Below the pieces are notes generated by a model. It worked only from the letters and a program-made list of their open reading frames with translations. It was not told where the DNA came from and searched no databases. The position numbers and the translations under genes were made by a program. DNA of 64,000 bases, from the NCBI GenBank assembly GCA_038496445.1, contig JALMLS010000122.1, positions 78,108-142,107 of the forward strand, read 5' to 3'. Numbering within the stretch: the first letter of the stretch is position 1; each line of letters begins with the position of its first letter. This document shows positions 1 through 63,228 of the stretch, piece after piece. Source of the DNA: Trichosphaerium sp. ATCC 40318 (lineage: Eukaryota; Protista; Tubulinea).

Positions 1-2919
1 TCCCCACAGTTCAACATCAGTCTAAAAGGTAAATTCCAAAATACAACGTAAAACTCATGTAAGGAAGGTTTGTCACCAAAGGACAAGCGGAGGAGGGAAG
101 CAAAGAGCAAAAAAAGCCAGCGGGATGAACGCTTAATAAGCTCACGAAGTGAATCTAACCTATAGTACGCTTGTCAAGCCCGCCGTTGTGCGACTAGATA
201 CAATGAATCTTTACCAACTAATGTCATTTCAGCAAGCGGAGAGTGGTTAAGGCGCCGCAAATAAAGCATCAGCGATCTAAATCGGCAACATTTAACGGTT
301 CTTCGCGATTACGAGCTAAAGGTCGCACATCGTCAAAAGGAGAACCAAAATCAGCGCGTGGTGCGTAGGGTTTTGTTCTACTTGAGTTTTGCGCTGATCA
401 TCAAGCTGTTTTCTTTTTGGTGAATTACTAACATTTGTTTGTAAAGAGGAAAGTACTCGTGTCAAGCCGAAGAAAAAAGCTAAGATCGGTTCACCTTATA
501 ATGCACAACACAACCTTCATGTTCGTAAAGGAGAGAAAGGTCTAGAAGGATTACCACCTGTGTGGGTCACAATTTTAAAGGCAAGGTTTTAAACCTTTTT
601 TTATTTTTTTTTCTCATCGCCATGTACCTTTTTATGACTTTTTTTACTTTGGTGTTTTTTAATGAAAGTTGGATTAATTATTCAATAGGGTCTGGGTTAC
701 TCTGATGATCAAATATCTGAGAATTCAGAAGAAATTAGAGATGTCATTAATTTTCAGGATACAAGAAACTTACGTGCTTCTTCTTCGTCCACAGCGTCTC
801 TACCGGAGTCATCTCCTAAACAAAATAATATTCTATGTACGCAAATATTTATAACTTCCTTCTGGGTGGTAGTCAAAAGAAGGCAGCCAAATCAATTTAG
901 AAAATATAAGTTTGCATAAGGTGGAAAGAAAACGTTTCTAAATAACTATATAGGGAATCACATTGATAGTATGTGCTTGGATCCAAAAGATTTATATACA
1001 ATGGACACCGTCATAGGTATGTAGAAAAACTTGAAGTATTTACAATGATATGCACAAAGCTCTAAAGTCTCGTAATTTTCTACCATTTTCTCGGTATTGA
1101 ATTATAATTTTCCTGGATATTGTATTCTGCGCATTGCGAATACTCGGCATTAACGTGCAAAATATCATCAACTTGTAAGACAACGTACAAGAAATGTACA
1201 GTGAGGTTTTCGCCAAAGTAACTGGTTTTTGATTGTTTTTTTTTTGTGGTCAACTACTGTCATTGTTTCGTTCTAACAACTGTTTATGTAATAGGTGAGG
1301 GCTCTGAAGGTGTTATATATAGCGGTAAAGATCGTATATCAAACAAAGAAGTTGCTATTAAAAGCATGAATCTTAAAGAAAATGAGCTTGATCGTACAGC
1401 TCAAGAACTTCATATTATGAAGACGTGCAACCATGAAAATATTGTAGAATTTTATAGAGCATATTATTGGGATGGTAGGCTATATATTATACTTGAATAT
1501 ATGGATGGTGGTAGCCTTGCTCATTTACTTCAATATCATAAGAAATTTCCTTTTTTAGAGCGTCAAATACAGTTTGTATGCTTTAATGTTCTTAATGGAT
1601 TACGTTATTTACATAAACATCATCGTATGCATAGAGATATAAAGAGCGATAATGTTCTTTTAAATACTAAAGGTGCTGTGAAAATCGGAGATTTCGGTTT
1701 TTGTGCACAGTTAACTGAAGTTCAACAAAAAAGGAATACAGGAAGTGGAACACCTTACTGGGTACGGCAATATTGTTTTTTATAAAATCTTTATTTATTC
1801 TTTTCAATATCCCTGATTATTGATTTTAGATGGCACCAGAGAGTAAGTGTAGAACGACAACGACATTAGTTTTCTTTTTTTTTCAGGCTGTTTTTTTTTT
1901 TGACATTTTGATTTTTTTGTGGCTTCTGTTTGTCGTCTTGGTGGTAAAATAGAAATATTGATTACTCATATACATGTAGTTATACGTGGTAAGAAGTACG
2001 GAACCAAAATTGATATTTGGAGTCTTGGTAAGGCTAGCTTTTTTTTTTTGTTGTAAAGTTTCTAATCTTGTTTTTTTCAATAGGTATACTCTTGATGGAG
2101 ATGGCTGAGGGTTTACCTCCTTATTTTGACATGGCAGAGTTTGATGCTCTGTTGTATATTAGAAAACATGGCGCACCAGAACTAAAACAGCCATCACAAT
2201 GGTCAGATGCTTTCAAGGTACGAGAAACTTGTATTTACTAGTTTTATTTCAGTTTTCCAAGTTTACTACATTCTGGCATTCTATGCGCTTTGTGTTAGAT
2301 ATCATTCTTTCAGTTTCTTTGTATTTGTATTTAACACGTTTTTCTTGAAGGGGTTTTTAGCATTGTGTATAACAAAGAATCCTGCTTCACGTGGTACTAG
2401 TAGTGAACTATTACAACATCGTTGGATGACTGTGCAGGCTCTAGATGCCAATCAAAGGCGTATTGTACCTATAATAGATGCTATAAAAGCACATAAGGAG
2501 AATGAAGTCATAGCACTAAAAGCTAGAGCGGTACGCCATTTTTTTTGATTGAATCAAATTCTCAAAAAAAATTCTTGAAAAAAAAAGGTAACCAACAATT
2601 CTACTCTTGTGCTCTCTCTTGAAGTAACACAAACCAATTATTTTACAACAATAGAGTAATACCAAGCGTGTTGCTTTGTGCAAATTCTTTTAAGTAATGT
2701 AGCCAAACAGGGGTTTTTTGAAATCCTTTAAAAAAAAATTCAGAAATATAGTATCGCTAAGATGACTTTTAGGCTCAGCATCTTGTTGATATTGGTATAA
2801 ACATAGCTGCATCAAAAAAAGATAATAATTCCTCACCTAAATCACGTAGTGGTAACTCAAGAGGAAAGAAACGAGATCACCATCATCATAAAAAAGTAAC
2901 AATAGCAGATGAATCCTAA
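1..2919 (+). CDS. PAK/STE20-family Ser/Thr kinase with CRIB (PBD) domain; multi-exon, 5' end outside window
   Basis: Exon ~448-580 reads KIGSPYNAQHNLHV...GLEGLPPVW (CRIB). Kinase exon 1294-1761 has GEGSEGVIY, VAIK, HRDIKSDN, DFG, KRNTGSGTPYW. A 13-nt exon gives MAPE, followed by DIWSLG and EMAEGLPPY. Last exon 2773-2919 ends in TAA. Confidence 0.92.
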
Positions 2920-3295
2920 AGATGCACAAAAATTACTAGTATCCTTGTGAATAAAAACACTAGTGGAGAAGGTGGCATTGGCTTGTGTTTTGAAGCTTTC
3001 TTTTAACTTAAGAGCAATGAATCCTATTCAACCAAATTTTCACTGTTCCAATATGAGCACGCGAAAAACGGACCAGTTTTCTCTTGCTTGGTCAGACAAA
3101 CAATAAGAAAACTCGCTATTTTTAGCTAGGTCAACTGTATACTAAATTTGTAATAAAGTTTGACCTTCACGTGAATGCAGAAACTATTATGTGTACGCAA
3201 CAAGCTCCTAGATTTTTTTTTTACACTTGGTGTACCGAGGACGAACATATACGTTCACACTTCCTTTGACTTTTTATTGTTCGTGGTGTCGCAAT

Positions 3296-6200
3296 ATGCA
3301 ACGACCAGAAGCGGATAGCACTGCAAAGTCTACAAAACCAGGTTTTAGCGCGCTATGGGCTCGTTTAAACCACGCAGCCCCACATACAACTTTTGGTACA
3401 ATAAACTATCTTCGTCTTTCTGTACGCACCCTGTGCACCTTCTAAGGTGAATGTAATATACTTACATGTTGTTTAGCGTAATATTACTACTGTAAGTGTA
3501 GTAATTGCCTTGGGAGCCTTTTCCATCACGTTTTCCTCCTATTTAAACTATTTCAAAACCAACCAGTGTACAAACTTCTCCCAAGTGTTCACTGTACGTT
3601 GTTATCTACAAGTTTAGCTTATACACACGGACAACTGACGTTTAAGACTGAATAACGGTTTTGTTATTTAACGTTAAGCTCTTGATTAACACGCTAAATT
3701 ACATAGCGCTAGTTTCGAGTCAGTTCCAGTCAGAAGGCTTTGCCATGAAGCAATGCAATATTAATTTAACGCTCTGGGCTACTTGATAAACACTACACCG
3801 ATCAGTAGCAAGCACTTGACATTCCTGACTACCAAGCATATGAAGTACTCCATAATAATCTCATAATGTTACCTGTCAGTGTTCACAACCTATCTCGAAA
3901 GATTAGGTATTTTATACTCTTACCACGTAAAAGTGTGCACGTGTTTATGTTTGAGAATGGCTTGATTTTCGTGGTAGTTACTGAGCATGAAAGATATTAA
4001 TGACAAAAATAGAGATGAATATTAATGTATTTATGGATGGTTGTGAAGACTGACAGGTAACCCTTTGAGATTATGGCTTACTTTATATGCTTGGTAAGCA
4101 GAAATATGTCAATTGCTTGCTACCGATCGCGAGTGGTCTTTTATCAAGTCGAGCATTAAATTCATTTGCGTTACTTCATGTCAAAGCCTTCTGAATCTGG
4201 AACTGAATCGAAACTAGCGCTATGTAATTTAGCGTTATTTCGCCTCAAAAGCCCAACTATTCTCCGTCAATTCCTCGATGTCATCTAACAATTCTAACAT
4301 ACCTTCTTTTTATATAGAGTGTGTCTTGGTTTGCACCATTTTATTTAGAGCGAATAATTCAAAATTTTTGTGTCGGTTTTTATTATGGTAGTCTAATATT
4401 ACTATTTGTGCAATTATTTAGAGACAGGTATGTTTTTATTTGGCAAGTAGCCATTCTCTCATATCTTTCTAGACAACAACCATTGTTTAATATTAGTAAG
4501 TATACATATGAAAAACATATCACAGTATTTCTTGAAACAGCATAAAGGTAAAGTTGCTGAACAACTTGCAAAGAGTTATTCAAAATATGGAAAAGTTTAT
4601 GGTGTCTGTACCTTTATATGACAATAAGAAAAATTGTTTGATACCAACAACAGGCAGAAAGTGTTGTAATGAAGCTTATATAACGTTTGAATCAACAGAA
4701 GGAGTGAGTGCTGTTTATCAAAAACAGTATTACAAAAAGTGTTGTAAACACCAAGAAAGGTATGTCCAATCCTTTAAAAGAATCTTTCTTAACTTGCACG
4801 ACTATTACTGACTCCTTATTGATAGAAGAGTAAGGGCTGAAGTACCACAGGTACCAGAAGCAATCGATATGGACAAATGGTCTGTCCAGACTTCATTCTA
4901 TCGAAGGGGTTTTAGTATGAACTTTGGGGTTTTTTTTTTACTTGTTTTGTTTGTTGAACTTGGAATTAACACTGGATAATAGTGGTAGTAGTGATGGCTG
5001 TAATACTTGGCCTTATCTTAGGAAGTTCTGCTGTTATTTGTTTGAGATACACTGTGAGCCTTATCACTGACAATTCAGCCAGTGTTTTGTTAGTTTAATG
5101 AGCGTTTTCCTTGTTTCTATTATTGAAAGCATTCTACGTGATTTATCAACCTGTATGTTGGTCACATGACTCACTTACCTTAAAACAACCGCAATTCTCA
5201 TTCATGAATGATATCTAAATTGTTTTCTAGATATCACAGACAAGTTAATTTGTCACTCTAACCGTTCTTTCAAGGTACTGTTGTGTTTTTTTTGTGGTGT
5301 CAAACTTTTTGCTATTTCAGCATATTGACACCAAGGATAACATATTTCAAGAGTTTCTGTGATATTAATGGTATAATTGTAGCAAATCAATATAGTTTCT
5401 AATTACCAGATAATACGAACAATTCTAGTAATTGTTGTAATCACGTATTGCTTTTCATCAGTAGTACAAATGCAAAACGACTTTAGAGATAGGGAGCTAT
5501 TTTTGGTTGAAAGTACAGAACAAGAATTTTCACGTATTACTGGACTAGCTTATACCGATGCCACTCAATTCTTGGTAAAACTTAACACCTTGAACTATTT
5601 ATAGCGTTTTTGCGACTTGCTCAACTTTTTTCTTAATTTATTCTTATTTCTTTTAGATTTTATTCTCAGCAATGTCAATATTTATTGAGAATTTTGCTGA
5701 GCTTGTGAGACCCAAAAAACATTTAATGGAATACTTTGGTTTATGGTACGTCTTCTAACACCTGATAAAGATCACAAAAGTGCCTTTAAGTCTGATTTTG
5801 TTGTTAAGTGTCAAAGATGAACCAGAGTTTCCTCTTGGAAGCAGATATGGTAGCCTAGCTGCTGATAGCATACCAATGGTGTTAGCAGTTAAAATAAGCT
5901 TTGCAATATTTATATTTACAGGGATAAGTTGTGCCTGTCGGTACCTTAGAGACAAATACCTTGGTACACCTTTGTTTGCAAGTTTTTTTTGCAACTTGCT
6001 TTTTTTTGGGACTCTGTGAAAACAAACAGCTTTGTAATTAAAGTCAATACTAATTGGTAACTTTTAAGTGCCAAACAGATACAAAACAAGGAGTAAAATG
6101 CCATTTAAACTTGATTTTGTTTCACACACGGCAGTTTTGTTAATGAAGTCAAGATAAAGAAAAGTTTATCCTCAATAAGCTAGCTTAACTAACATTGTTT

Positions 6201-9787: not shown

Positions 9788-10543
9788 TCAAGGCTTTCTG
9801 TAGATCATATGGCCAGGACGATGTTCACAGTACAGCACTTCAATATTATCGGCAACATACTTGCAGTGACCTTTTAATTTACCACTTTCAAACCAACTTT
9901 TGTATTCTCCGTGCCTCTTACCATTAGAGAAATAAAGTTGATATTTCAATTGACCACTATTATACCACCCTTTGTATTCACCTTCTTTTTTACCATTCAC
10001 ACAAAAGTAATGCTCTTGTAGATAACCAGTTATTCTCCAAGTCTTGCATTCACCTTCTCGTTTGCCATCAACGTAATACCAAGCCTCCTCTAACTGTCCG
10101 TTGCTATACCACCCTTTGTACTCGCCATGTATCACTCCCTTAGAGTACACATGATGCTCGCATATTTGACCATTCTTATACCAGTACTTGTAATCTCCGT
10201 CGTACATGCCGTCTACAAAATTACACTGACTGCTTATTTGCCCGTCTTCATAATATTGTTTGTGTTCTCCATGGTTTACACCATTTCTCCAATTACTTTG
10301 ACGAAGAACTATGTTATTCGCCAAAGCAGTCTGTTTCCACAAACCGTGTTTGTTCATCTTGTCGTCAAACCTTGAAGTCGTCGCTGTGTATTTGGACAGA
10401 AGAGGCCATAATCTATACACTTCTACATCCAGATCAGCGATATCTAGATGTAATTCAACAGGAAGGTCAAAAAGGTGGCGACAATCTAGTTTTGCAATTG
10501 CTTTCGGTTCTAAGGGTAATTTACGTCTCACGTTGCTTGCCAT
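9788..10543 (-). CDS. Intronless F-box-like + MORN-variant repeat protein
   Basis: ATG at 10543 (MASN). LFDLPVELHLDI is F-box-like, followed by ~6 24-aa repeats of the type GEYKxWYxNGQLxxxxxYxxGK. Confidence 0.8.
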   Translation of the reverse strand: MASNVRRKLPLEPKAIAKLDCRHLFDLPVELHLDIADLDVEVYRLWPLLSKYTATTSRFDDKMNKHGLWKQTALANNIVLRQSNWRNGVNHGEHKQYYEDGQISSQCNFVDGMYDGDYKYWYKNGQICEHHVYSKGVIHGEYKGWYSNGQLEEAWYYVDGKREGECKTWRITGYLQEHYFCVNGKKEGEYKGWYNSGQLKYQLYFSNGKRHGEYKSWFESGKLKGHCKYVADNIEVLYCEHRPGHMIYRKP

Positions 10544-11499
10544 TTGGTACTTTTGAAAAAAGAATTCAATCAAGCCAATTATTTGACCAGTTGATTGATC
10601 TTGATAGTTTTCAGTGAAAATCAGACCACTGGTTAAGATTTAAGGCGTTTTCTGTACATCAGCAAGCCTCATTTTCACTAGCTTGAGTTATTATAAAATA
10701 GGAGCCATACCACTTAAAAACCAATGTGTGAATTAAAATCACTTGGAATCGAACAACGACTGAAAGAAAAAAACTCGAAGTTAAATTTTACTTTCATTAA
10801 AACTTGACGGTACTTCTTCCTTTTGTCTGAGTCAGTACTAATTCGACATTTGATATATTACACTTGTCATTCATATTGGAAGAACGCTACTTGAGAGCAA
10901 CAAAAGATGCTTTACGGACTAAGAAAAAATTCGAAACAATAAAAAAAGCCCAAACGTTTTTTAGTAACTATAACAACCACAACCACATTGCCAATAACGC
11001 TTCTAATAACTTCAGAATTGCTACCTAGTATTGGAACAACCATCTGACGTTATGACAAGATTTAGCTTGTTTCCAACAACTTAAACAAACATGAATACTA
11101 ATAAACAAACTACAATCATGTGTACCTGAAGAAGACTTGCTCCTCTGCAATTATCTTTTTTGAACTTTAGGCAATTTTCTTACTTGTTAGACGTTGGTTT
11201 GGGTGAAAGAACCAAAATTATCTTCCTATTTAGGTAAGTATAGTGCGTAATACACGTGCTCAAATCATTTATTTTCTTCCAAACATACTTGTAGGTGTCC
11301 TACAACTTCAAAGGTAAAGCGAGAATGTGCTACAACTGCTCCAAATAGCATTTTTGTGCACAATTGCCAGTACGTTTTTATAAAGAAAAATCAGTGAACT
11401 TACTTTTGTTAGGGCCTAGCTTTACGTATACATACTGATGCAAGGGGTGTTACAAAAAGGGTTCAAATAGCTACATATTTAGTTAGTACTTAATGCTAC

Positions 11500-33382: not shown

Positions 33383-34678
33383 TTACATACACATTCTTAT
33401 ACGATGTTTTTTGTTTATAACTTCCTGTACATCATTCAAATATTTGATTCCCTTATCTGTTATCCCAGAACAAAAAGATATGTTGATACTGTGTACACCA
33501 CACGCCAAGGCTTTCAAGCAATCATCTGTTACACTTGTACCTGATAAATTAATAGTATGCACACCAGCCAAAGGCTTAATACCATCATCTGTTAGGTCAG
33601 AAAGATTGTATAAGTCAATAGTGTGAACGCCAACTAATGTCTTAACACTGTCATTTGTCAAATTGTAGCAATAGCCAAGGTTAATAGAATGTACTCCAAT
33701 CAGTGCTTTTATGCTTTCATCCAACACCATTGTATGACTGATATCAATAGTGTGAACTCCAGCTAACTCTTTAATACCTGCATCTGTAATTTTTAGACAG
33801 CCACTTAAGGCTATGTTATGAACACCAGCCAACGCTTTAAGCCCTTCATCTGTTACTTTTGTGTTACTGATACTGATAGTATGAACACCAGCCAACTCTT
33901 TAATACCAACATCTGAAACGTGTTCACAATTGCTTAAGTTAATCGTATGAATTCCAGCAAATGCTTTAACCTCTTCATCACGTATATAAGTAAAACTGAC
34001 GTCAAGGTTATGAACACCAACCAATGCCGTAAAGCCATGCCAAATGTTTTGACAGTTCTTTAAGCTAATAGTATGAGCGCCAGCCAACGCTTTAAGCCCT
34101 TCAGCTGTCACCTCTGTACATTGCATATTGATATTATGAGCACCTGCCAACGCCTTAAGACCTTCAGCTGTCATCAAATTATTGTACCCAATGTTAATGG
34201 TGTGTACGCCTTTTAACGCTTTGAGTCCTTCATCCGTCAGTTTGGTAGCACTAACATCGATCGTATGAACACCAGACAATGTCTTAAGGCCTTCAGCTGT
34301 CACTTTAGTACTTCCTAGAATAATAGTATGAATAGAACCTGATAATTCTTTAATGCATTCGTCTGTAACTTCAGTATTGTAACCATCAATATAAAACGCT
34401 TCTTTTAGATACTTAAAGTCCGTAGGCTTCAGATTGCACTTCAAATGGACTTCGAATTTTTGTATAAGCGAGGGACATGACTTAAATATCTCCGCAAGAT
34501 TTTCTCTGCTGCTAATTTTAATAACACGTTTTTTATAGCTGTATAAGCTTGCGAATAGAGAGCATGTTTCACGTAAAGGCTGTATACATGTGCTACTGAT
34601 GAAATTGAATACAAAAACCCACATCTCAATTGGTAGGCATGGTATATCATCAGCAATACGATTAGATCCTTTATCCAT
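33383..34678 (-). CDS. Intronless F-box + LRR protein (431 aa, ~15 repeats of 21-22 aa)
   Basis: LPIEMWVFVFNFI...LRETCSLFASL F-box; repeats LAGVHTIxLSxTxVTDEGLKA. Confidence 0.92.
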   Translation of the reverse strand: MDKGSNRIADDIPCLPIEMWVFVFNFISSTCIQPLRETCSLFASLYSYKKRVIKISSRENLAEIFKSCPSLIQKFEVHLKCNLKPTDFKYLKEAFYIDGYNTEVTDECIKELSGSIHTIILGSTKVTAEGLKTLSGVHTIDVSATKLTDEGLKALKGVHTINIGYNNLMTAEGLKALAGAHNINMQCTEVTAEGLKALAGAHTISLKNCQNIWHGFTALVGVHNLDVSFTYIRDEEVKAFAGIHTINLSNCEHVSDVGIKELAGVHTISISNTKVTDEGLKALAGVHNIALSGCLKITDAGIKELAGVHTIDISHTMVLDESIKALIGVHSINLGYCYNLTNDSVKTLVGVHTIDLYNLSDLTDDGIKPLAGVHTINLSGTSVTDDCLKALACGVHSINISFCSGITDKGIKYLNDVQEVINKKHRIRMCM

Positions 34679-46924: not shown

Positions 46925-47692
46925 CTAAAAGGTATACACGCAAGTCCCATTCAAAATTGTAAACCATTCCCCTGTAACATTAGTGGTATGTGCATAAATA
47001 GTGTATGTTGGTGCACCAACAAGTACTTTTATGCCTACATCAGTTATTGAAGTGTTATTAAGGCTTATGGTATGAACTCTGGTGAGTGCTTTAAGACCTT
47101 CATCAGTAACTGAAGTGTGATCAAGGTAAATCTCATTAACTCCAGCAAGTGCTTTAATACCTTCGTTGGTTACTGCAGTATTGCTGAGGTATATAGCATG
47201 AACCCCTTTAAGTGCTTTAATACCTTCATCAGTTACCAAAGTGCTGCAGAGGCCAATAGTATGAACTCCAGCAAGTGCTTTAACACCTTCATCAGTTACT
47301 GAAGTGTTAGCAAGGTGAATCTCATGAACTCCAGCAAGTGCTTTAACACCTTCATCTGTCACTGTAGTATTAGAAAGGTAAATCGTGTGAACACCAGCAA
47401 ATAGTTTGATAATGTTATCGTCGAAACGACGTCCTTTAAACGTGATTTTTGTGTATTTAAGAATACCAGCATATTTCGCAGCTGATTTTGCCTGAACTGG
47501 TGTATTAATTGTAATGGCGTGATATCCAATAATATCGTGAATGATAGAAGCAAACAAATAACAAGTCTGACAAGCTGCAAATCGTGATTTGGTCGTTTGA
47601 CGCAAGATGTGCGCTAACATCTCTGTAGGTAGCTGTAACAAACTCGTACTGGTGGTGTCAATTTTAGAACGTTTTGAGGTGGAAAGCATCAT
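46925..47692 (-). CDS. Intronless F-box + LRR protein (255 aa, ~7 repeats of 21 aa)
   Basis: LLQLPTEMLAHIL...CQTCYLFASII F-box; 63-bp tandem units encoding LAGVHxIxLxxTxVTDEGxKA. Confidence 0.92.
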   Translation of the reverse strand: MMLSTSKRSKIDTTSTSLLQLPTEMLAHILRQTTKSRFAACQTCYLFASIIHDIIGYHAITINTPVQAKSAAKYAGILKYTKITFKGRRFDDNIIKLFAGVHTIYLSNTTVTDEGVKALAGVHEIHLANTSVTDEGVKALAGVHTIGLCSTLVTDEGIKALKGVHAIYLSNTAVTNEGIKALAGVNEIYLDHTSVTDEGLKALTRVHTISLNNTSITDVGIKVLVGAPTYTIYAHTTNVTGEWFTILNGTCVYTF

Positions 47693-51758: not shown

Positions 51759-54700
51759 ATGTCGAACTTGCGTATTGTTGGCGTTGACGTTGGTGGTACA
51801 TTCACAGATATAATTTACGCCGAAATTGGCACTTCGAAAGTTCATACTCATAAAGTCCCTACCACGCCCCAAGATCCTTCGATTGGTGTGGTAACGTACG
51901 CTGTGTTTCATTTCTCGCTCTAGACATACCGTTTAAACCTTGCTTTTTTTGTACTCTAACCTTATTGTTATTAACCTCGCGAATTTAGCGGTATAAAGCA
52001 ATTATGTGAGCAAAACAATATTCCATTGAGTTCTATCTCCCATGTAATGCATGGTACAACTACAGCTACCAACGCTATATTGGAGCTTGACGGGTACGCT
52101 TGTACTGAATTGGGCGTTGAGAAGTTATTTTTAAGATATCTTCAACAAAAAGCCTAAATTAAACCTTTACACATTCAAATTGCGCCAACAACACTGTTTC
52201 CTTTCGCGTTTTAGTTGTAACTTTCGAAAAAATTGCTGCTTTTCTATCTACTTCTATGTAGTATCTATTTTCCTGCATCCTAACGCATGTACCTTAGGTG
52301 CCGTACTGGTATGATCACTAACGAAGGCTTTCGCGATATTCTACATATTGGTCGTCATCAACGGCCTCAACACTACTCTATTCAACAAGAAGTACCTTGG
52401 CATGACAAAATCCTAATTAAGAGGCGCTTTCGTAAAGTAGTAAAACAACGACGTGCGCCTCCTACAGGAGAAGTTCTTGTACCTCTTGATGAAGAAGGAG
52501 TAAGAAAGGCTGCGCGTGAACTAAAAGAACAAGGTGTAGAGGTAAACCAAAGACAGAATTCCTTTGTTTTTTGGTTTTTTGACTTTTTGTGCTTTTTAGG
52601 CTGTTGCTGTTTGTTTCTTGTTTTCGTACTTAGACCCTACGGATGAGATAAGAGCTGCTGAGATTGTTAAGGTGAGTATTGTATAAGAACAGTCCACAGA
52701 AACAGATAGATTTTGGTTTTTTTTTCTTTTTTTTTTAATTTCTTTTTCTGTTGCGGTTTTTTTACCTTGTTTGCAAGCTTAGCTTGTAAAAAATATTGTA
52801 CCATGTTTTAATATAAAATAGGAAGAATGCCCGGACATGTATGTTTGTTCTTCTGCCAATGTATCGCCAATGTTCCGCGAATTCGAGCGCTTCACTACCG
52901 CTGCAATGAACGCCTATGTTGGACCTCTAGTATCAAAATACGTAGATAACCTACGTGACACACTGAGAAATAGTGGTATCACAGGTGAATTGAGAGTAAT
53001 GACATCGAATGGTGGCATTGCCACACCACAAATGGTAAAAAAACTACTTTACTCCTTTGCCATTATTTATTTTCTCACGTGTTAAATTCCTTTTAAAGGT
53101 TCGTGCAAAACCTGTTCAAACAGTACTTTCTGGACCTGCCGGAGGTGTATTAGGAAGTGTTTGGATTGGAGAACACTGTGATAGACCAAACTTGATTACT
53201 TTTGATGTTGGTGGTACATCTGCTGATATTGGTATTATTAAAGACTTAAAATACGCTGAGGTACTGTATTTCAACTTTGTTTTTTGTTTTCAGCAAGCAA
53301 TGATATTCGTACGCTTATTTTTTTGATTTCTAGGCTTCTGCTCGTGATACTGAGATTGCAGGATTCCCTCTTATGATTACAATGATTGATATTCACACGA
53401 TTGGCGCTGGTGGTGGTTCTATTGCTTACAAGCACCAGAGCGGACAATTCAGAGTTGGTCCTCAGTAAGTTTACATTATTTCTATAGACTCTCTTGCCAA
53501 CAACTCTTTTAGATCAGCTGGATCAGTTCCAGGCCCTTCTTGTTATGGTAGAGGAGGAAAGAAGCCAACTGTAACAGATGCAAATGTAGTGTTGGGAAGG
53601 CTTGCACCAGAGAACTTCTTGGGAGGAAACATGACCCTTGATATTGCTGCAGCCAAAGCTTCTGTTGGCGGTTTAGCAAAGGAGATGGGTATCACACTTG
53701 AGGAATGTGCTTTAGGCATTCTTACGCTAGTAAACAGTAACATGGCGAATGCCATTAGGTACGATTAAGTGATTTCAAGCAAGTTGTTAACAGACTTCAT
53801 AAAAAAAGGTCCAAGACAGTACAGAAAGGTATAGATCCAAGAGAATTTTCTTTGGTTGCTTTTGGTGGTGCTGGACCTCTTTCTGGTGTTGAAGTTGCTG
53901 CAAAATTACAAATTCCAGAGGTTATCATTCCTACATACCCTGTACGTAGCTTACTTTTTATGTTTTTGTTCAACCATTCGTTTTCTGAGAAAATTGTTGG
54001 CATGTGACCCCTTTTTGATTTTCGTACTTGGAAATTATAGCGACACTCTAGTTTGGACTATCTACCACGACTGTGGACATTTTATTGATACTTTGGTTGT
54101 TGCTGTAAAGCACTTTTGTCTAATGTTTTTTTTTCTTGTTAGGGTATCACATCTGCTATGGGATTGCTTACAACAAACCTTAAATATGATTCTTGCCGTA
54201 CTGTTTTTGGAACAGAAGGTGGCATGAACTTTGATAAACTTAATGCTGATTATGAGGCAATGGAAAAGGAACTCAAAACACTTTTGGTAGCTGATGGAGT
54301 AAAGGATGATTGCAGTACGATAAATAAATACCACGTAAACTTTCTTAGAAATTGACTATCTGCTAGTAACATTCCACCGCGCTGGAGATTTGCGTTATGT
54401 TGGCCAAGGTTACGAGCTACGTGTTGCTGTACCTTCAGGAAAAATTGACGCAGAGTCCATCAAATGTGTACGTCAATTATTATCCTCGGTTGTCTTTTTG
54501 GTAACTTCTATTGTAGGTATGGAAAAAATTCTCAGAACAACATCTCGCTGATTATGGTCATATCCATGAAGAAAGCAATGTTGAGTTTGTCAATGCGCGT
54601 TTGGTAGCTATTGGTGACGTACCAAAAATACAAGAATTAGAGCCTTCTCAAGTATGTACAATCCTGCTACATATTTAGTAAAATTAACAACCAAAAAGGC

Positions 54701-57700
54701 ATCAAGTCAATTAAAAGACTCTGTCCTCAAGACTGCAAAAACAATCTTCAATGTTAATGGCATTGTAGAAGAGTTTGAAGTACGTAGTTTAGAACTAGCA
54801 CTACTAACATGTTCTCACACTATACTAGACAACATTCTATCAACGTGTGAAACTACCTGTTGGTGTAGATATCAAAGGACCTGCTATCATCTGTCAAAAA
54901 GACACAACCAGCGTCATTCCACCACTTTGTGTTTTCAATGTACGCTATCACTAGCTAATTTCTTCTTTGTTATATACTTTAATCTAACTACTATGAAGGT
55001 AGCTAAGGATGGAAGTATCATGATTAATACCAAAGAACTGTGTAAAGCTCTCGCTTCTTCAACAGACGTTACCAAGAATGGTTCGTTTTTTTCTTTTACA
55101 ATCAACCTTCTAAAAACAATTGCCTATTTAAGGTGCCATTGATCCAATTACTGCTGCTGTTATACAAGGTGAACTTGAGAATATTGCCATCGAGATGGGA
55201 TACAAGCTTATGCGTATGTCTTACTCAAGTATCATTCGGGAATCAGAAGATTTTGGTGCAGCTTTAGTATCAGCTGATGGTCACCAATTATGCGAATCAA
55301 AACAATCCACACCTCTTCAAGTATGCCTATCTCACGATTTATATATGTCACTCTAACGACATCACTTAGTGTGGACCTATTCCTGGTTACGTCAAGGGAA
55401 TGTTAAAGATTCTAAAAGAGCGTAAACAAGAGATCAAAGAAGGCGATGTTTTTGTACATAACGATCCTTACGCAGGTAACCACTGTCTCCACTTATTTGA
55501 ACCAACTCTTAACAACTGAACTAGGAGCTAGTCACTGCCCTGATGTTGGATTCCTTGTACCTGTGTTTTACGAAGGTGAAATAATTGGATACTCAGCAAC
55601 TACTGCTCATCATCTTGATATTGGTGTAAGCCTTTCATCGCGTTTTCTGTTACTTGTTTTATTTGTTATTAATTGTGATTTTGTTTTAGTCTTGTGCTCC
55701 TGGTTCTTGTGGTATTGTAGATGCTATTGATTCATACGCTGAAGGCCTCACACTTCGTGCTCTTAAAGTATATGATAAAGGCGTCAAAGTAGAACCAGTT
55801 TGGCAGTTTATGCGTGATAATATAAGAACATCAGATATGGTTGTAGGAGACATGGAAGTACGTCATTATGCTGGCACTAATTATTTTATACAAAACCCGA
55901 AAACAGCAAAAGTTTTATCAATTTTTTGAGAGCACGTTTTTTTTATTTTTGGATATTTTACATTTATTGCTTGTACAACCACGACAAGTATTTCTTTTAT
56001 AATATTCCTTGATGGTTGAGAACTAGTTAAAAATTATTTTCGAAAAGAAAGAAAATCCTCTTGTTGGTTGTTGTGTTCAAGTATTTACTGTCTTTATATT
56101 AGGCACAAGTAGCTGCAGCTAGAATTGGAGCAGAACGTTACATTAAACTCGTAACACGTTATGGTAAAGATGTTGTTAATTCAGCATATAAATACCTTCT
56201 TGTATCATCTGAGAAGCTTATGCGCGATGCTATTCGTAAACTGCCTGATGGTAAGGTCTTTATTGATAATTGTTTTTTTTGAACATCCCTTTGGTTGTGT
56301 TGCCCTTAACTTTGTTTTGTATAGGCGAATACAAAGCTACTACTTATCTTGATGGATACGAGTACATTGATAAACCAAATTACCATGATTTGCCTCTTTG
56401 TGTTACCATTACAATTAAAGGAGATGATATGGTACTTGTTGCTGTTTACCTTTCTTGGACATGTCCTTCTCGCTTTATTTTATTTTATTGTCGCCGTATT
56501 ACATACCTAGGACTAATATCAACAATATAGATTGTCGACCTCGAAGGCACAGCTGATCAGATTGATGACAAACCTATCAACATGCCTTTCCATGTACGCT
56601 TGCCTCGATATTTTAAGTTTTTCTTTCAATTTTGTTTATTGAGTTACAACAAAACCTTAATATGATTTATAGGGTACCGTTGATATAGCCATTTGGTTGA
56701 CTATAAGAAGTACACTTCTTGACTCTGATGTGTACGGATACATCCCACAGAACACTGGTTTATGTAAACCAATCCAAATTAAGGCTCCTTTGGGTACTTT
56801 AGTCATAACACTCGTAGCTTTGATTTCTGTTTTATTAATATACTCCCTGTAGGTTGTCTCGCAAACCCAAAGTTCCCAGCACCTACAATTGCTCGTTTTT
56901 GTCCAGGTATGAATGCGTTAAAGCAAGTGATAATTTTTGTTAATGTTTTCTCAAAGGAAATCAGCTTGCTGATACTGTTATGAAGGCTTTGGCCCAAGCA
57001 GCTCCTGAACAAGTTTCTGGTGGTATTGGTAACCTTAAAGTTATTTCTTTCGCTGGTATGAGACCTAACGAAAGCTCCCACTGGGTACACATGGAGATCT
57101 TTGAAGGCGCCTATGGCGGTAAGTATTGTCTACTGTTTGTTTCAAAACGTGAGAGCTTACTCAGTTTGATTAGGCCGTTTTGGACAAGATGGTATGGATG
57201 CCATTGATACTCTATATGCTAATACAAGAAACAATCCTATTGAGGATATTGGTACGTAATTTGAAGAAAAAGGTAAAAGATACTGTAAATTTACTTTTAC
57301 CTAGAATCTCATTTACCACTTCGTGTTATGCGTTATGAACTCAGAACTGACCATGTACCTGCTGGAAAATGGCGTGGTGGACTCGGAGCTATTAGAGAAG
57401 TTACCTACCTATGTGATCATGCTGGAGCTTCAGTTGAAGGCGAAGGTACAGTGATACCAACTTTTTAACTTTTTGTGCTAAAAACTTATTAGGTCACAAT
57501 CACGCACCTTGGGGTCTTGCAGGCGGTAGTGATGGCGCTACTGCGAAGCTAACTTTGCGTGCTGCTGATGGATCCACTGAAAAGATGCCTTCGAAGATGG
57601 TATGGATTCTAGAAACGAAAAACCGTTGTGGAACTAAGTTTCGTTTTTATAGGCATATAAATCAGCTGGTAAAGGAGATACATTTATTGTAACTGGTCCT

Positions 57701-57999
57701 GCTGGTGGTGGTTATGGTAACCCACTTGAACGTGATCCAGAGAAAGTATTAAGCGATTTCTTGGATGACTATATAACAGTTGAAACCGCGAAGAAGGACT
57801 ACTGTGTCATCATTGAAAAGGTAATAACAAAAAACCCAAAGCACTCCTCTAAAAAAGGAAAAACCAATTCACCTTAGAACTCCGGTTCTTTCGTTTTATT
57901 GTAATTAAAATACTCCGGAATCAATACTAAAATACACTGTAGGGTGCCGTTAATCATGATGCCACAAAAAAATTGCGTGCAGAGAGCACAAAAGCTTGA
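51759..57999 (+). CDS. ATP-dependent hydantoinase/oxoprolinase-family lactamase: in-frame fusion of bacterial-type A (HyuA-like) and B (HyuB-like) subunits, >20 introns
   Basis: A half: [80 protein letters not shown] half: DPIT...[59 protein letters not shown]. The halves join in frame across intron 55081-55132. Confidence 0.92.
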
Positions 58000-60557: not shown

Positions 60558-63228
60558 ATGGGTAAGAAACTGTTATGTTGCGGCGTTTTTGCTGTAATTA
60601 TCGGATTGTCCATTCCTCTTCTGTACCAAATGTATCAAGTACGCCAACTGTCTAGTTTACGCCCTGTGAGCCTGATAGTCATTGTTAGACTTCGCATTGG
60701 GCAGAAAAGCGCTGGCATCGTTGTTCAAGCCTTGGTGTACCGTACTTACTCGCAAAACGCTCTTGGCTACGCTCCAACGCTATTTTCGACGCGCCAACGA
60801 TTGATAACACCAAACGGTTTCCTTTACCTCAAAAACCAGGAAATAAAGGCTACAAACACCGCGTAACAACTGGACACTTCAACGCTCCCAGTACGCAAAA
60901 AACAGACGAAATCAGAGAAAAAAACCACCAAACGACACTCTTTAGTTTGAAAGCATTTTTATCGTTCTTGCTTGTGGTTCATTCTAATCTCATATTCCCG
61001 AAAACAAAAAAAAATCAGTCTGATTTTTGGGTTTAAAACAGCCCGAATTGACGTTTTTATGACTTAATTTGGTTTAGATAACAAGTTTATGGGTGCTGTT
61101 GGTCAACCTCTTGCTCGTAATTCAAATATATCTGGAATGCCGCGAGTAAACTTGGACATTAACGACCCAAGCCCTAAAAAAGTAGCTGAGGCATTTTTAC
61201 ATCGGAAGAAAAACTTTGACGATCCTTCTTTAAGTACTGATATTGCGAACCTATGGGCTGCTGCTTGGATACAATTTATGATACACGATTGGGTACCAGC
61301 TCATTTGGTTGATAAAACAAGTTTCCTAAAGGTGGACGGGTACGCCAAAGACTTCTTAAGTCTTTCAGTTTTTTGTTATTAAATTTCTCTTTCTAGCAGG
61401 GACATGCTCTTCACGACTGAGTTAACTGATGAGAATGACGGAATTCCAGCTTATAGTAATAAGGTACTATTAAAGACAAAATTTGATCATAAAAATACAC
61501 GTGCTAAGCACGTGACTTCAAAGGCACCACATTGGTGGATGGGATCTCAGATTTATGGTACAAGTATAGAACAAGAGAAATCTCTTCGGTCACTTACTGA
61601 TGGAAAAATGCGTGTAACAAAGAACTATATGCCTCTAGACCCAGATACAAATCTTGAACTTGTTGGTGCGGGTAGTCCAAACCTTTGGTTTGGTTTAACA
61701 ATGCTACACTATATCTTCTTGCTTGAGCACAACCAGATATGTGATATGCTCAAAGAGAATAACCCATCTTGGGATGATGAAAGACTTTTTCAAATAGCGC
61801 GTCTTATCAATACAGCGCAGATAGCAAAGATTCATACTATAGATTGGACTACTGCTATTGTACAAGTGAGTTGATTTAACATGTTTTTTTGAAATTAGCA
61901 CGTGATTTACACGTGGGTTCGAAGAGGTTTTTTTTTTCTGATTTTTTTTATTTATTAAGCATCCAACTGGTCGTTTTGCTCAACACACTTTGTGGTCTGG
62001 ATTTCTTGGAGGTTTATTACCTTCCCTTGCTGAGAAACGTAAAAGCTTGGGTCCTCTTGATAATTCTTTGATGTGGGGTATTCCCTCCTCAGAGCAAAAT
62101 ACACAAGGAGTAAACTTTGCGCACACTGAAGAGTTTGTAAGGTGTGTTTAAAGAAGTGTTTTCCATCACCTTTCCTTCTTTTCTATGCTTCCATGGTAAC
62201 GCTTATTTTTTTAAATAGCGTATATCGCTTCCATGCTCTTTTACCAGATGTCTTCAAACTTGTATCTCATAAAGGCAACCATGAGAAGATAAAGGTAAGT
62301 TCTGCTTTTTTTTTTCTTTGAATTATTTTATTTCGCAATTTATTTTGGTTAAACTTTGAGTGTAGGATGTTAAAGCGGAAGACTTTATTATGTACAAATC
62401 CTATTTACTCAATACAAAACATCAAATAGATACTATTTACTCTCTTGGAGTTCATAGAGTCGGTCAACTGTCTCTACACAACTACCCTAAATTCTTAACA
62501 AATCTAAAAGTACCCGCACTAAAGGATGCCATTGATATGGCTGCTGTAGATATTGTCCGTGACCGCGAAAGAAAGGTAAAGCTAATCTATACCTAGCACA
62601 TTAATACACTAAATAATCGAGAATAACATGAACTCAGAAAGTTCACAAGAAACGATTTTTTCGATTTAACTCTTACTTTTTTCTTTTCTCGTCTTTTTTT
62701 TGTACTTGTCTAGTTACCTAACATAAAGTTTTCGTTTAGACACCTCGGTTTAATGATGTAAGGAGAGCTCTTGGATTACAGCCGCTAAAATCATATGAAG
62801 AACTCACTAGAGATAAAGATGATATCGAAACTCTGAAGGAAGTTTACGGCAAAGATGGTATAGAAAAAGTTGATTTAATTGTTGGAACTTTAGCTGAATC
62901 TAAAGTCCCTGGATACTTATTCTCTCCTACAATATATGCTTTATTCACAGTACAAACACAAAGACGTATAGAAGCAGATAGGTTCTTTACAGATGATTAT
63001 AATGAAGATGTTTATACAAAGGAAGGTAAACAATGGGTTGAAAGTTCCACTTTTAGAAGTGTTTTATTACGTCACTTTTCAAGTGATCTTTCTTCCTTTT
63101 TACCTCAAGGAAAGAATGCTTTTATGCCTTGGGATAAAGAAACAAAACCTGTATATGAGGATGTATATGGTGATATCTTAAAAACATTTATTTCTTATGA
63201 TTGTTACTTTGGAGAAGCTGACTACTAA
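60558..63228 (+). CDS. Alpha-dioxygenase-like heme protein (peroxidase-cyclooxygenase superfamily) with N-terminal TM
   Basis: NLWAAAWIQFMIHDW (distal His), HWWMGSQIYG, EHNQICD, AKIHTIDWT, TEEFVSVYRFHALLPD (catalytic Tyr + proximal His), DIVRDRER and RRIEADRFF, all characteristic of plant alpha-DOX. Confidence 0.88.

Follow-up and report, generated by a model that had tools for sequence, protein, structure and literature searches.

How could a protist come to make, from one intron-rich gene, the two subunits of a bacterial enzyme? The question is raised by a locus on the plus strand of contig JALMLS010000122.1 of Trichosphaerium sp. ATCC 40318, within a stretch of 64,000 nucleotides (nt) that we call the window and to whose first letter all coordinates refer. 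At this locus, sequences homologous to hydantoinase A (HyuA) and hydantoinase B (HyuB) follow one another in a single spliced reading frame, referred to below as the amoeba gene. We put at about 0.9 the probability that this is a real single gene, that it originated from a clade of bacteria in which the two subunits are unfused, and that it was fused independently.

The gene model was built by hand, with a fused bacterial relative as guide and with splice sites read off the sequence. Its parts are as follows.

51759..57999, plus strand: full extent of the fused coding region, with GT-AG introns and an open frame of 1297 amino acids (aa), near-gapless against bacterial homologues
51759-51895, 51989-52093, 52298-52541, 52600-52671, 52822-53034, 53099-53260, 53334-53464 and 53513-53758, plus strand: exons 1-8
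53809-53941, 54143-54314, 54367-54467, 54517-54651, 54699-54779, 54829-54939 and 54999-55080, plus strand: exons 9-15
55133-55320, 55370-55475, 55525-55625, 55690-55857, 56103-56250, 56325-56431, 56531-56593 and 56673-56793, plus strand: exons 16-23
56853-56906, 56957-57118, 57174-57251, 57305-57445, 57493-57599, 57653-57820 and 57943-57999 (stop included), plus strand: exons 24-30
51759..55080, plus strand: A half, hydantoinase A (adenosine triphosphate (ATP)-binding, actin-like ATPase part), exons 1-15, assigned by PF05378, PF01968 and the A-half tree
55133..57999, plus strand: B half, hydantoinase B (metal-dependent hydrolytic part), exons 16-30, assigned by PF02538 and the B-half tree
55081..55132, plus strand: A/B junction intron, 52 nt, phase 1, GTTCGT...TTTAAG, read from the sequence
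55026..55137, plus strand: linker of 20 residues (aa 691-710) that separates the final conserved residues of A from the initial ones of B, split by the junction intron

The model comprises 30 exons and 29 introns, all of them GT-AG and 47-245 nt long (median 58 nt). Its frame of 3894 nt opens with an ATG at 51759, closes with a TGA at 57997-57999 and has zero internal stops. In the alignment with bacterial homologues the spliced protein is almost free of gaps, and 27 of the 29 exon junctions are seamless, far more than would be expected by chance. The boundaries chosen for intron 1 (51896-51988, 93 nt, GTACGC...TTTAG), for instance, yield an invariant Gly and the GIKQLCE stretch. At the seam, exon 15 ends with ...STDVTKN plus one base at 55080, its last ~17 codons belonging to the linker, and exon 16 starts at 55133. 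We infer the splicing of all 29 introns from the DNA sequence. An earlier reading of the same DNA (the first-pass annotation) had described continuous A and B halves with a 52-nt intron at their junction and more than 20 introns overall; the junction intron proves exact to the base, with the frame open across it, and the count of introns was if anything modest.

Family scans, database searches and searches of solved structures were run exon by exon, the spliced translation being used for local alignments, identities and trees. On the plus strand, the stop-free exon stretches match in order Hydant_A_N (PF05378), Hydantoinase_A (PF01968) and Hydantoinase_B (PF02538), that is, three of the four domains of the superfamily exceed the gathering score on single exons. 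Hydant_A_C (PF19278) gave no match on short single exons; exons 10-15 align collinearly with proteins that carry it.

For every exon tested, the top match among solved structures was the single-chain N-methylhydantoinase 7hk5/9h03 (1288 aa; the start of the amoeba B half falls at about its residue 701), which has the same A-B architecture and length as the amoeba protein. An exhaustive protein search with exon 3 returned mainly fragments, together with several unfused A subunits of ~695 aa and one fused protein, P0034 (1294 aa). The latter represents a large bacterial single-chain clade with >7000 matches, under names that include Baekduia, Gaiellaceae and Vicinamibacterales; the 'methylhydantoinase' of Baekduia soli belongs to it. 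Membership of this fused 7hk5/P0034 clade was our first working reading of the amoeba gene. It was ruled out by global identities, by trees and by approximately unbiased (AU) tests: the clade stands apart at ~43% identity, its linker is unrelated, and no fusion shared with the amoeba gene was found.

The nearest relatives were instead found among unfused genes. A scan of bacteria, taking one genome per species and the exon-3 alignment as query, returned the best 80 loci. Most are from Alphaproteobacteria (Reyranella, Thalassobaculum, Sulfitobacter, Rhodospirillales), and others from Candidatus Entotheonella, a Neobacillus and further bacteria. Nearly all these loci have A (~690 aa) and B (~580 aa) as adjacent, separate reading frames. 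In global alignments, the A half of the amoeba protein has a median identity of 56% to 56 unfused bacterial pairs, against 44% to the fused P0034 clade, and the contrast is stronger for the B half (66% against 42%). The closest pair sampled, L014 from Candidatus Entotheonella sp. TSY1, is 63.6% identical to the amoeba protein. At its junction, the TAA stop of A is followed after one base by the ATG start of B in a different frame, with GGAGAG as ribosome-binding site.

These two-subunit pairs (L014 and those of Reyranella, Thalassobaculum and Sulfitobacter), which go by the names N-methylhydantoinase A/B or hydantoinase/oxoprolinase family protein, resemble the amoeba gene in the clade to which both halves belong, in identity (56-68%), in motifs and in the order A then B. 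They differ from it in being intron-free and in having separate frames, often one to few bases apart and out of phase with each other, whereas the amoeba gene is one frame. Because this continuous frame spans the A/B junction, we regard the amoeba gene as a descendant of the two-subunit HyuA/HyuB clade and not as a typical member. The first-pass statement that such subunits are normally encoded by two adjacent genes thus holds for the nearest clade, where A and B are almost wholly separate, but not for the family at large, in which bacterial single-chain forms are common.

Are there fused proteins within the unfused clade? We searched with a profile weighted to the unfused type, the first row of which was fused, so that fused-length proteins only were retrieved. 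Just two, P0313 and P0314, outscored the P0034 clade. P0313 (1301 aa, 55% identity to the amoeba protein; positions 2180-6085 of locus L087) has bacterial surroundings, namely an IS240-type transposase, a carbon-nitrogen hydrolase and an ABC transporter. P0314 (1311 aa, 50% identity) comes from the JGI metagenome 3300056388. The linkers of P0313, P0314 and the P0034 clade have no similarity to that of the amoeba protein.

Fragments from loci L001 and L002 had suggested that the closest bacteria are already fused, since in L002 one open reading frame (ORF) runs from the last part of A into the first part of B. This candidate was rejected, the contigs having a guanine plus cytosine (GC) content of 71-74% and frame-broken genes. 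More generally, L001, L002, L077, L083 and L091 are high-GC metagenome contigs in which the gene is split into three or four frames, probably through indel errors of long reads. Gene callers emit pieces of 100-500 aa there, which crowd the top ranks of exon-level searches and may be mistaken for fusions or exon-sized pieces.

The trees agree with the identities. In the A-half tree the amoeba gene falls within the unfused clade with a Shimodaira-Hasegawa-like approximate likelihood ratio (SH-aLRT) support of 99, with L014 as its sister (92); in the B-half tree the corresponding values are 100 and 97. When the two halves are concatenated (33 rows), the support is 100 for the clade and 98 for the amoeba gene with L014. 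Since clade and sister are the same for A and B, both halves appear to share one history. P0313 and P0314 also lie inside this otherwise two-gene clade, and they group neither with each other nor with the amoeba gene. AU tests reject the union of the amoeba gene with P0313 (p=1.6e-5), with P0314 (p=1.6e-4), with both together (p=7e-5) and with the 7hk5/P0034 clade (p about 1e-95), as well as its placement outside the bacterial clade (p=0.002).

That one eukaryotic sequence falls inside a diverse clade of bacteria argues for transfer from bacteria, and the common sister of the two halves for transfer of the pair jointly. A hyuA-hyuB pair from the mainly Alphaproteobacteria/Candidatus Entotheonella clade would thus have entered the protist lineage. 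The merger of its two reading frames would be unconnected with the fusions seen in eukaryotic 5-oxoprolinase and in all sampled fused lineages of bacteria, and after the transfer the gene would have acquired host codon usage and gained all 29 introns. The first-pass annotation had proposed the transfer of an operon followed by convergent fusion and intron gain, and it is largely borne out: A and B trees made separately lead to the same clade and sister, the closest bacterial homologues are unfused (as read directly at the L014 junction) with all fused forms more distant, every sampled fused form is rejected as sister, and 29 introns interrupt a gene of bacterial descent. According to reports cited in PMC12803844, bacterial operons have been transferred into fungi and amoebozoa, which is the same general event, adjacent bacterial genes being taken up together by a eukaryote.

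Several points weigh against this reading. The support values come from quick IQ-TREE searches. The AU tests used the LG+G4 model on 18 rows, and some of the groups were defined after inspection of the tree. The amoeba branch is long, with an amino-acid composition unlike that of the rest of the alignment. Bacterial sampling was limited to the 80 loci most similar to one exon; a closer, possibly fused relative may exist. Finally, A-B fusions recur in bacteria, so that the donor may already have been fused.

The last point bears on the timing of the fusion. As the near relatives are all unfused, we lean slightly towards a fusion that followed the transfer. A second cistron would go untranslated in a eukaryote, and a small change would have sufficed to join A and B, given that stop and start in L014 are one base apart. 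The complete account, with fusion placed after the transfer, is one that we hold with little better than even confidence.

Its strongest competitor is a donor that was fused beforehand, an unsampled lineage near the Entotheonella-type pair from which the protist would have received a ready-made single gene. Fusion has occurred repeatedly in bacteria, as seen in the single-chain clade of >7000 proteins and in P0313 and P0314 inside the unfused clade, and a single frame could be expressed immediately after transfer, which a two-cistron operon could not. Against such a donor, the nearest sampled relatives are separate genes, a sister position of P0313 or P0314 is rejected by the AU tests, and the linkers of these two are dissimilar. 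The fused-length profile search revealed nothing closer. Metagenomes scanned for a pattern peculiar to the amoeba gene and L014 gave an effectively blank result, with two loci only, both distant (43% identity). We rate a pre-fused donor as a serious contender, of somewhat less than even probability.

Could the junction intron itself be informative? It may be a relic of the event that removed the stop of A and the gap between the cistrons, the fusion having proceeded by conversion of gap into intron. On this bolder reading, the gene would offer a natural experiment, with a date attached, in how introns are gained and how an operon is converted into a gene. We consider this doubtful. At one intron per 134 nt, an intron inside the ~60-nt A/B seam is not surprising. 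If it were true, related protists with fewer introns, or with two genes, would reveal the order of intron gain and the route of fusion.

Another possibility is that no fused product is made, either because the junction intron is retained, yielding A only, or because the gene is a decaying relic. Retention would lead to an in-frame stop at 55140-55142 (ORF 54654-55142), and the junction donor, GTTCGT, is the sole one among the 29 that reads neither GTA nor GTG. However, the frame is intact over 30 exons, and exon 16 lacks its own start codon at the N-terminus of B. Moreover, of 229 columns that are near-invariant in the 80 bacterial homologues, 221 are retained in the amoeba protein (96%, both halves), metal ligands of B included, which would be unexpected if B were untranslated. 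Retention of these columns after codon adaptation and the gain of 29 introns argues for continued selection on both halves, and we regard the absence of a fused product as improbable.

Vertical inheritance, in which the gene would be an old eukaryotic paralogue of 5-oxoprolinase (OPLAH) and no transfer need be invoked, is less probable still. OPLAH and its yeast counterpart OXP1 are likewise eukaryotic single chains made of fused A and B, in the same order and of about equal length (PMC8453981, PMC12547972), and the amoeba gene is fully host-like in its introns and codon usage. Yet a deep position within a bacterial clade is found for both halves, the identity to one of its pairs reaching 64%, and the placement outside that clade is the one rejected at p=0.002. 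In the fused-length profile search, where an OPLAH of the same type as the amoeba gene would be expected at the top of the ranking, only P0313 and P0314, both apparently bacterial, came above the P0034 clade and no OPLAH-like protein did so. The exhaustive exon-3 search yielded no eukaryote-like orthologue, neither full-length nor of high identity (the top identity was <=71%, and no second fused-length protein was found). Contigs fetched for fragment matches of low GC or with unaligned ends were all bacterial, with a GC content of 63-68%, collinear and without introns. The amoeba gene is thus set apart from OPLAH indirectly, by its nesting in the bacterial clade and by profile ranking, its nearest relatives being unfused bacterial pairs and not proteins of the OPLAH type. 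To this extent, the first-pass claim of a bacterial two-subunit type distinct from canonical OPLAH stands. Canonical OPLAH, according to the first-pass annotation, carries the motifs IDRGGTFTD and RMGTTVATN; the amoeba protein reads VDVGGTFTD and HGTTTATN.

Bacterial contamination or an assembly chimera, which the bacterial affinities of the protein might suggest, is not credible for a gene with 29 introns of spliceosomal type, a GC content of 28% at third codon positions and a base composition that runs on evenly into its flanks, and with eukaryotic genes to either side of it within the 64-kb window, where no other bacterial-type neighbour gene was found. Overall, the exons have a GC content of 42% and the introns of 31%, as compared with 57-74% in the related bacterial loci.

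What might the protein do? The motifs claimed by the first-pass annotation, among them REFER and the C-terminal GGGYGNP..., are all present. The list below gives these and the predicted active-site positions, with residue numbers from the caprolactamase subunits CapA and CapB of Pseudomonas jessenii (structure 6yra).

51783..51809, plus strand: first phosphate-binding motif, VDVGGTFTD, its Asp matching CapA Asp11 (by motif; role from PMC8453981)
52050-52061, plus strand: HGTT motif
52876-52890, plus strand: REFER motif
53201..53227, plus strand: second phosphate-binding motif, FDVGGTSAD, its Asp matching CapA Asp295 (by motif; role from PMC8453981)
53520-53537, plus strand: adenosine motif GSVPGP (by motif)
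55243..55257, plus strand: SEDFG, its Asp being the first metal ligand (CapB Asp41; residue-by-residue alignment to 6yra_B)
55530..55619, plus strand: SHCPD...AHHLD, with His, Asp and His as metal ligands (CapB His99, Asp102 and His124; alignment to 5m45_A)
from 57704, plus strand: GGGYGNP... motif

The A part thus contains both DxGGT motifs and the GxxPGP, matched to CapA by motif and not by alignment at the level of residues. In the B part, all positions of the Asp-His-Asp-His metal site are occupied, according to residue-level alignments to 6yra_B and 5m45_A; the ligands of SHCPD...AHHLD correspond to His150, Asp153 and His175 of acetone carboxylase, and the alignment to 6yra_B covers residues 98-129. 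CapAB belongs to the same family, and its mutation-tested ATP-site aspartates and its Asp-His-Asp-His site are kept in the amoeba protein. It differs in consisting of two subunits, the amoeba protein being a single chain. The amoeba exons, scanned singly, match the NCBIfam models of CapA and CapB weakly. Against these models, which have a cut-off of 1000 bits, L014 and P0313 score ~556-566 bits (CapA, NF050156) and 263-288 bits (CapB, NF050157).

Metal ligands and the roles of ATP-site residues are taken from work on caprolactamase (PMC8453981). In that enzyme and in related carboxylases, the A part binds ATP through two DxGGT motifs and a GxxPGP, a tunnel joins the two sites, and in the B part a metal is held by Asp, His, Asp and His (PMC8453981). 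By analogy with these solved relatives, a likely mechanism is that the N-terminal A part of the amoeba protein would bind ATP and activate a cyclic amide or ureide, after which the activated ring would pass to the C-terminal B part, where the Asp-His-Asp-His metal would open it by hydrolysis. Two chains would probably pair, just as the solved caprolactamase is an (alpha-beta)2 tetramer built of two alpha-beta pairs. The protein has no N-terminal extension before its first motif, from which we infer a cytosolic location.

A side observation concerns the metal site of 7hk5. When residues 793-823 of 7hk5_A are aligned with 55527-55625 of the window, a Gln stands at the position of CapB His124, the third metal ligand of SHCPD...AHHLD, which is His in the amoeba protein, in P0034 and in acetone carboxylase. 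The metal site of 7hk5 may therefore differ from that of the rest of the family.

As to the substrate, the surroundings of the bacterial relatives suggest a pathway for the breakdown of N-heterocycles. A carbon-nitrogen hydrolase adjoins 16 of 56 bacterial loci (and also the fused P0313), a ring-opening amidohydrolase of the AtzD/TrzD cyanuric-acid/barbiturase type 11 of them, mostly in Reyranella, and an M20 peptidase one; a solute-binding ABC transporter is a further conserved neighbour of the unfused hyuA-hyuB pairs. On account of the hydrolase, AtzD/TrzD and M20 neighbours, our best guess is a hydantoin-like ring, the N-carbamoyl product of which would be handled by another enzyme. It counts against this that a partner carbamoylase was not found within the 64-kb window, nor was a carbon-nitrogen hydrolase, an AtzD/TrzD protein, an M20 peptidase or an ABC transporter. 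P0034 has other neighbours, namely a permease, an isochorismatase-family gene, a racemase and sarcosine-oxidase-like genes, a cluster that we take to resemble a creatinine degradation route.

Family, architecture and chemistry were thus already known. What is new is that a hyuA-hyuB pair of the Alphaproteobacteria/Entotheonella type has been turned into a single protist gene with 29 introns and a fusion of its own. This is a tidy but not unprecedented gene transfer, and current understanding is not overturned. The single-chain layout would have arisen at least four times in the sampled lineages (the P0034 clade, P0314, P0313 and the amoeba gene), and eukaryotic 5-oxoprolinase is a further case of fused A and B (PMC8453981, PMC12547972). 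The amoeba gene would therefore be one more independent origin of the A-B layout, besides those in 5-oxoprolinase and in three or more fused lineages of bacteria; evidently, joining the two subunits is easy and favoured.

The locus also shows cleanly how a unit of two bacterial genes became one fully eukaryotised gene, as seen in its 29 introns, its host codon usage and its eukaryotic neighbours. Since the bacterial origin is firm, all introns must be younger than the transfer, which makes the gene useful as a marker of intron gain in this lineage. As regards physiology, the protist probably possesses an ATP-driven, ring-opening amidase for hydantoin-like compounds, which is absent from most eukaryotes and which may matter for the salvage of nitrogen from prey or from the environment.

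Some properties of the introns may be added. Their density is 7.4 per kb of coding sequence. Phase 0 prevails (17 introns), followed by phase 1 (nine) and phase 2 (three). The donor begins with GTACG (GTACGT, GTACGC or GTACGA) in 11 of the 29, and a preference for GTACG as extension of the 5' splice site is unusual. In 21 of 29 cases, the downstream exon begins with G. No repeated introner-like sequence was seen among the 29 introns.

Other genes of the window encode F-box/leucine-rich-repeat (LRR), protein kinase, animal-type haem peroxidase and MORN-repeat proteins, all eukaryotic, and are located as follows.

61404-61874, plus strand: exon-like ORF just downstream of the amoeba gene, matching animal haem peroxidase (PF03098, E=5e-34)
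46925-47692, minus strand: F-box and leucine-rich-repeat (LRR_6) ORF
33383-34678, minus strand: second F-box and leucine-rich-repeat (LRR_6) ORF, with an additional weak match to a 2-hydroxyacid dehydrogenase domain
9788-10573, minus strand: MORN-repeat ORF
1246-1785, plus strand: exon with a protein kinase domain

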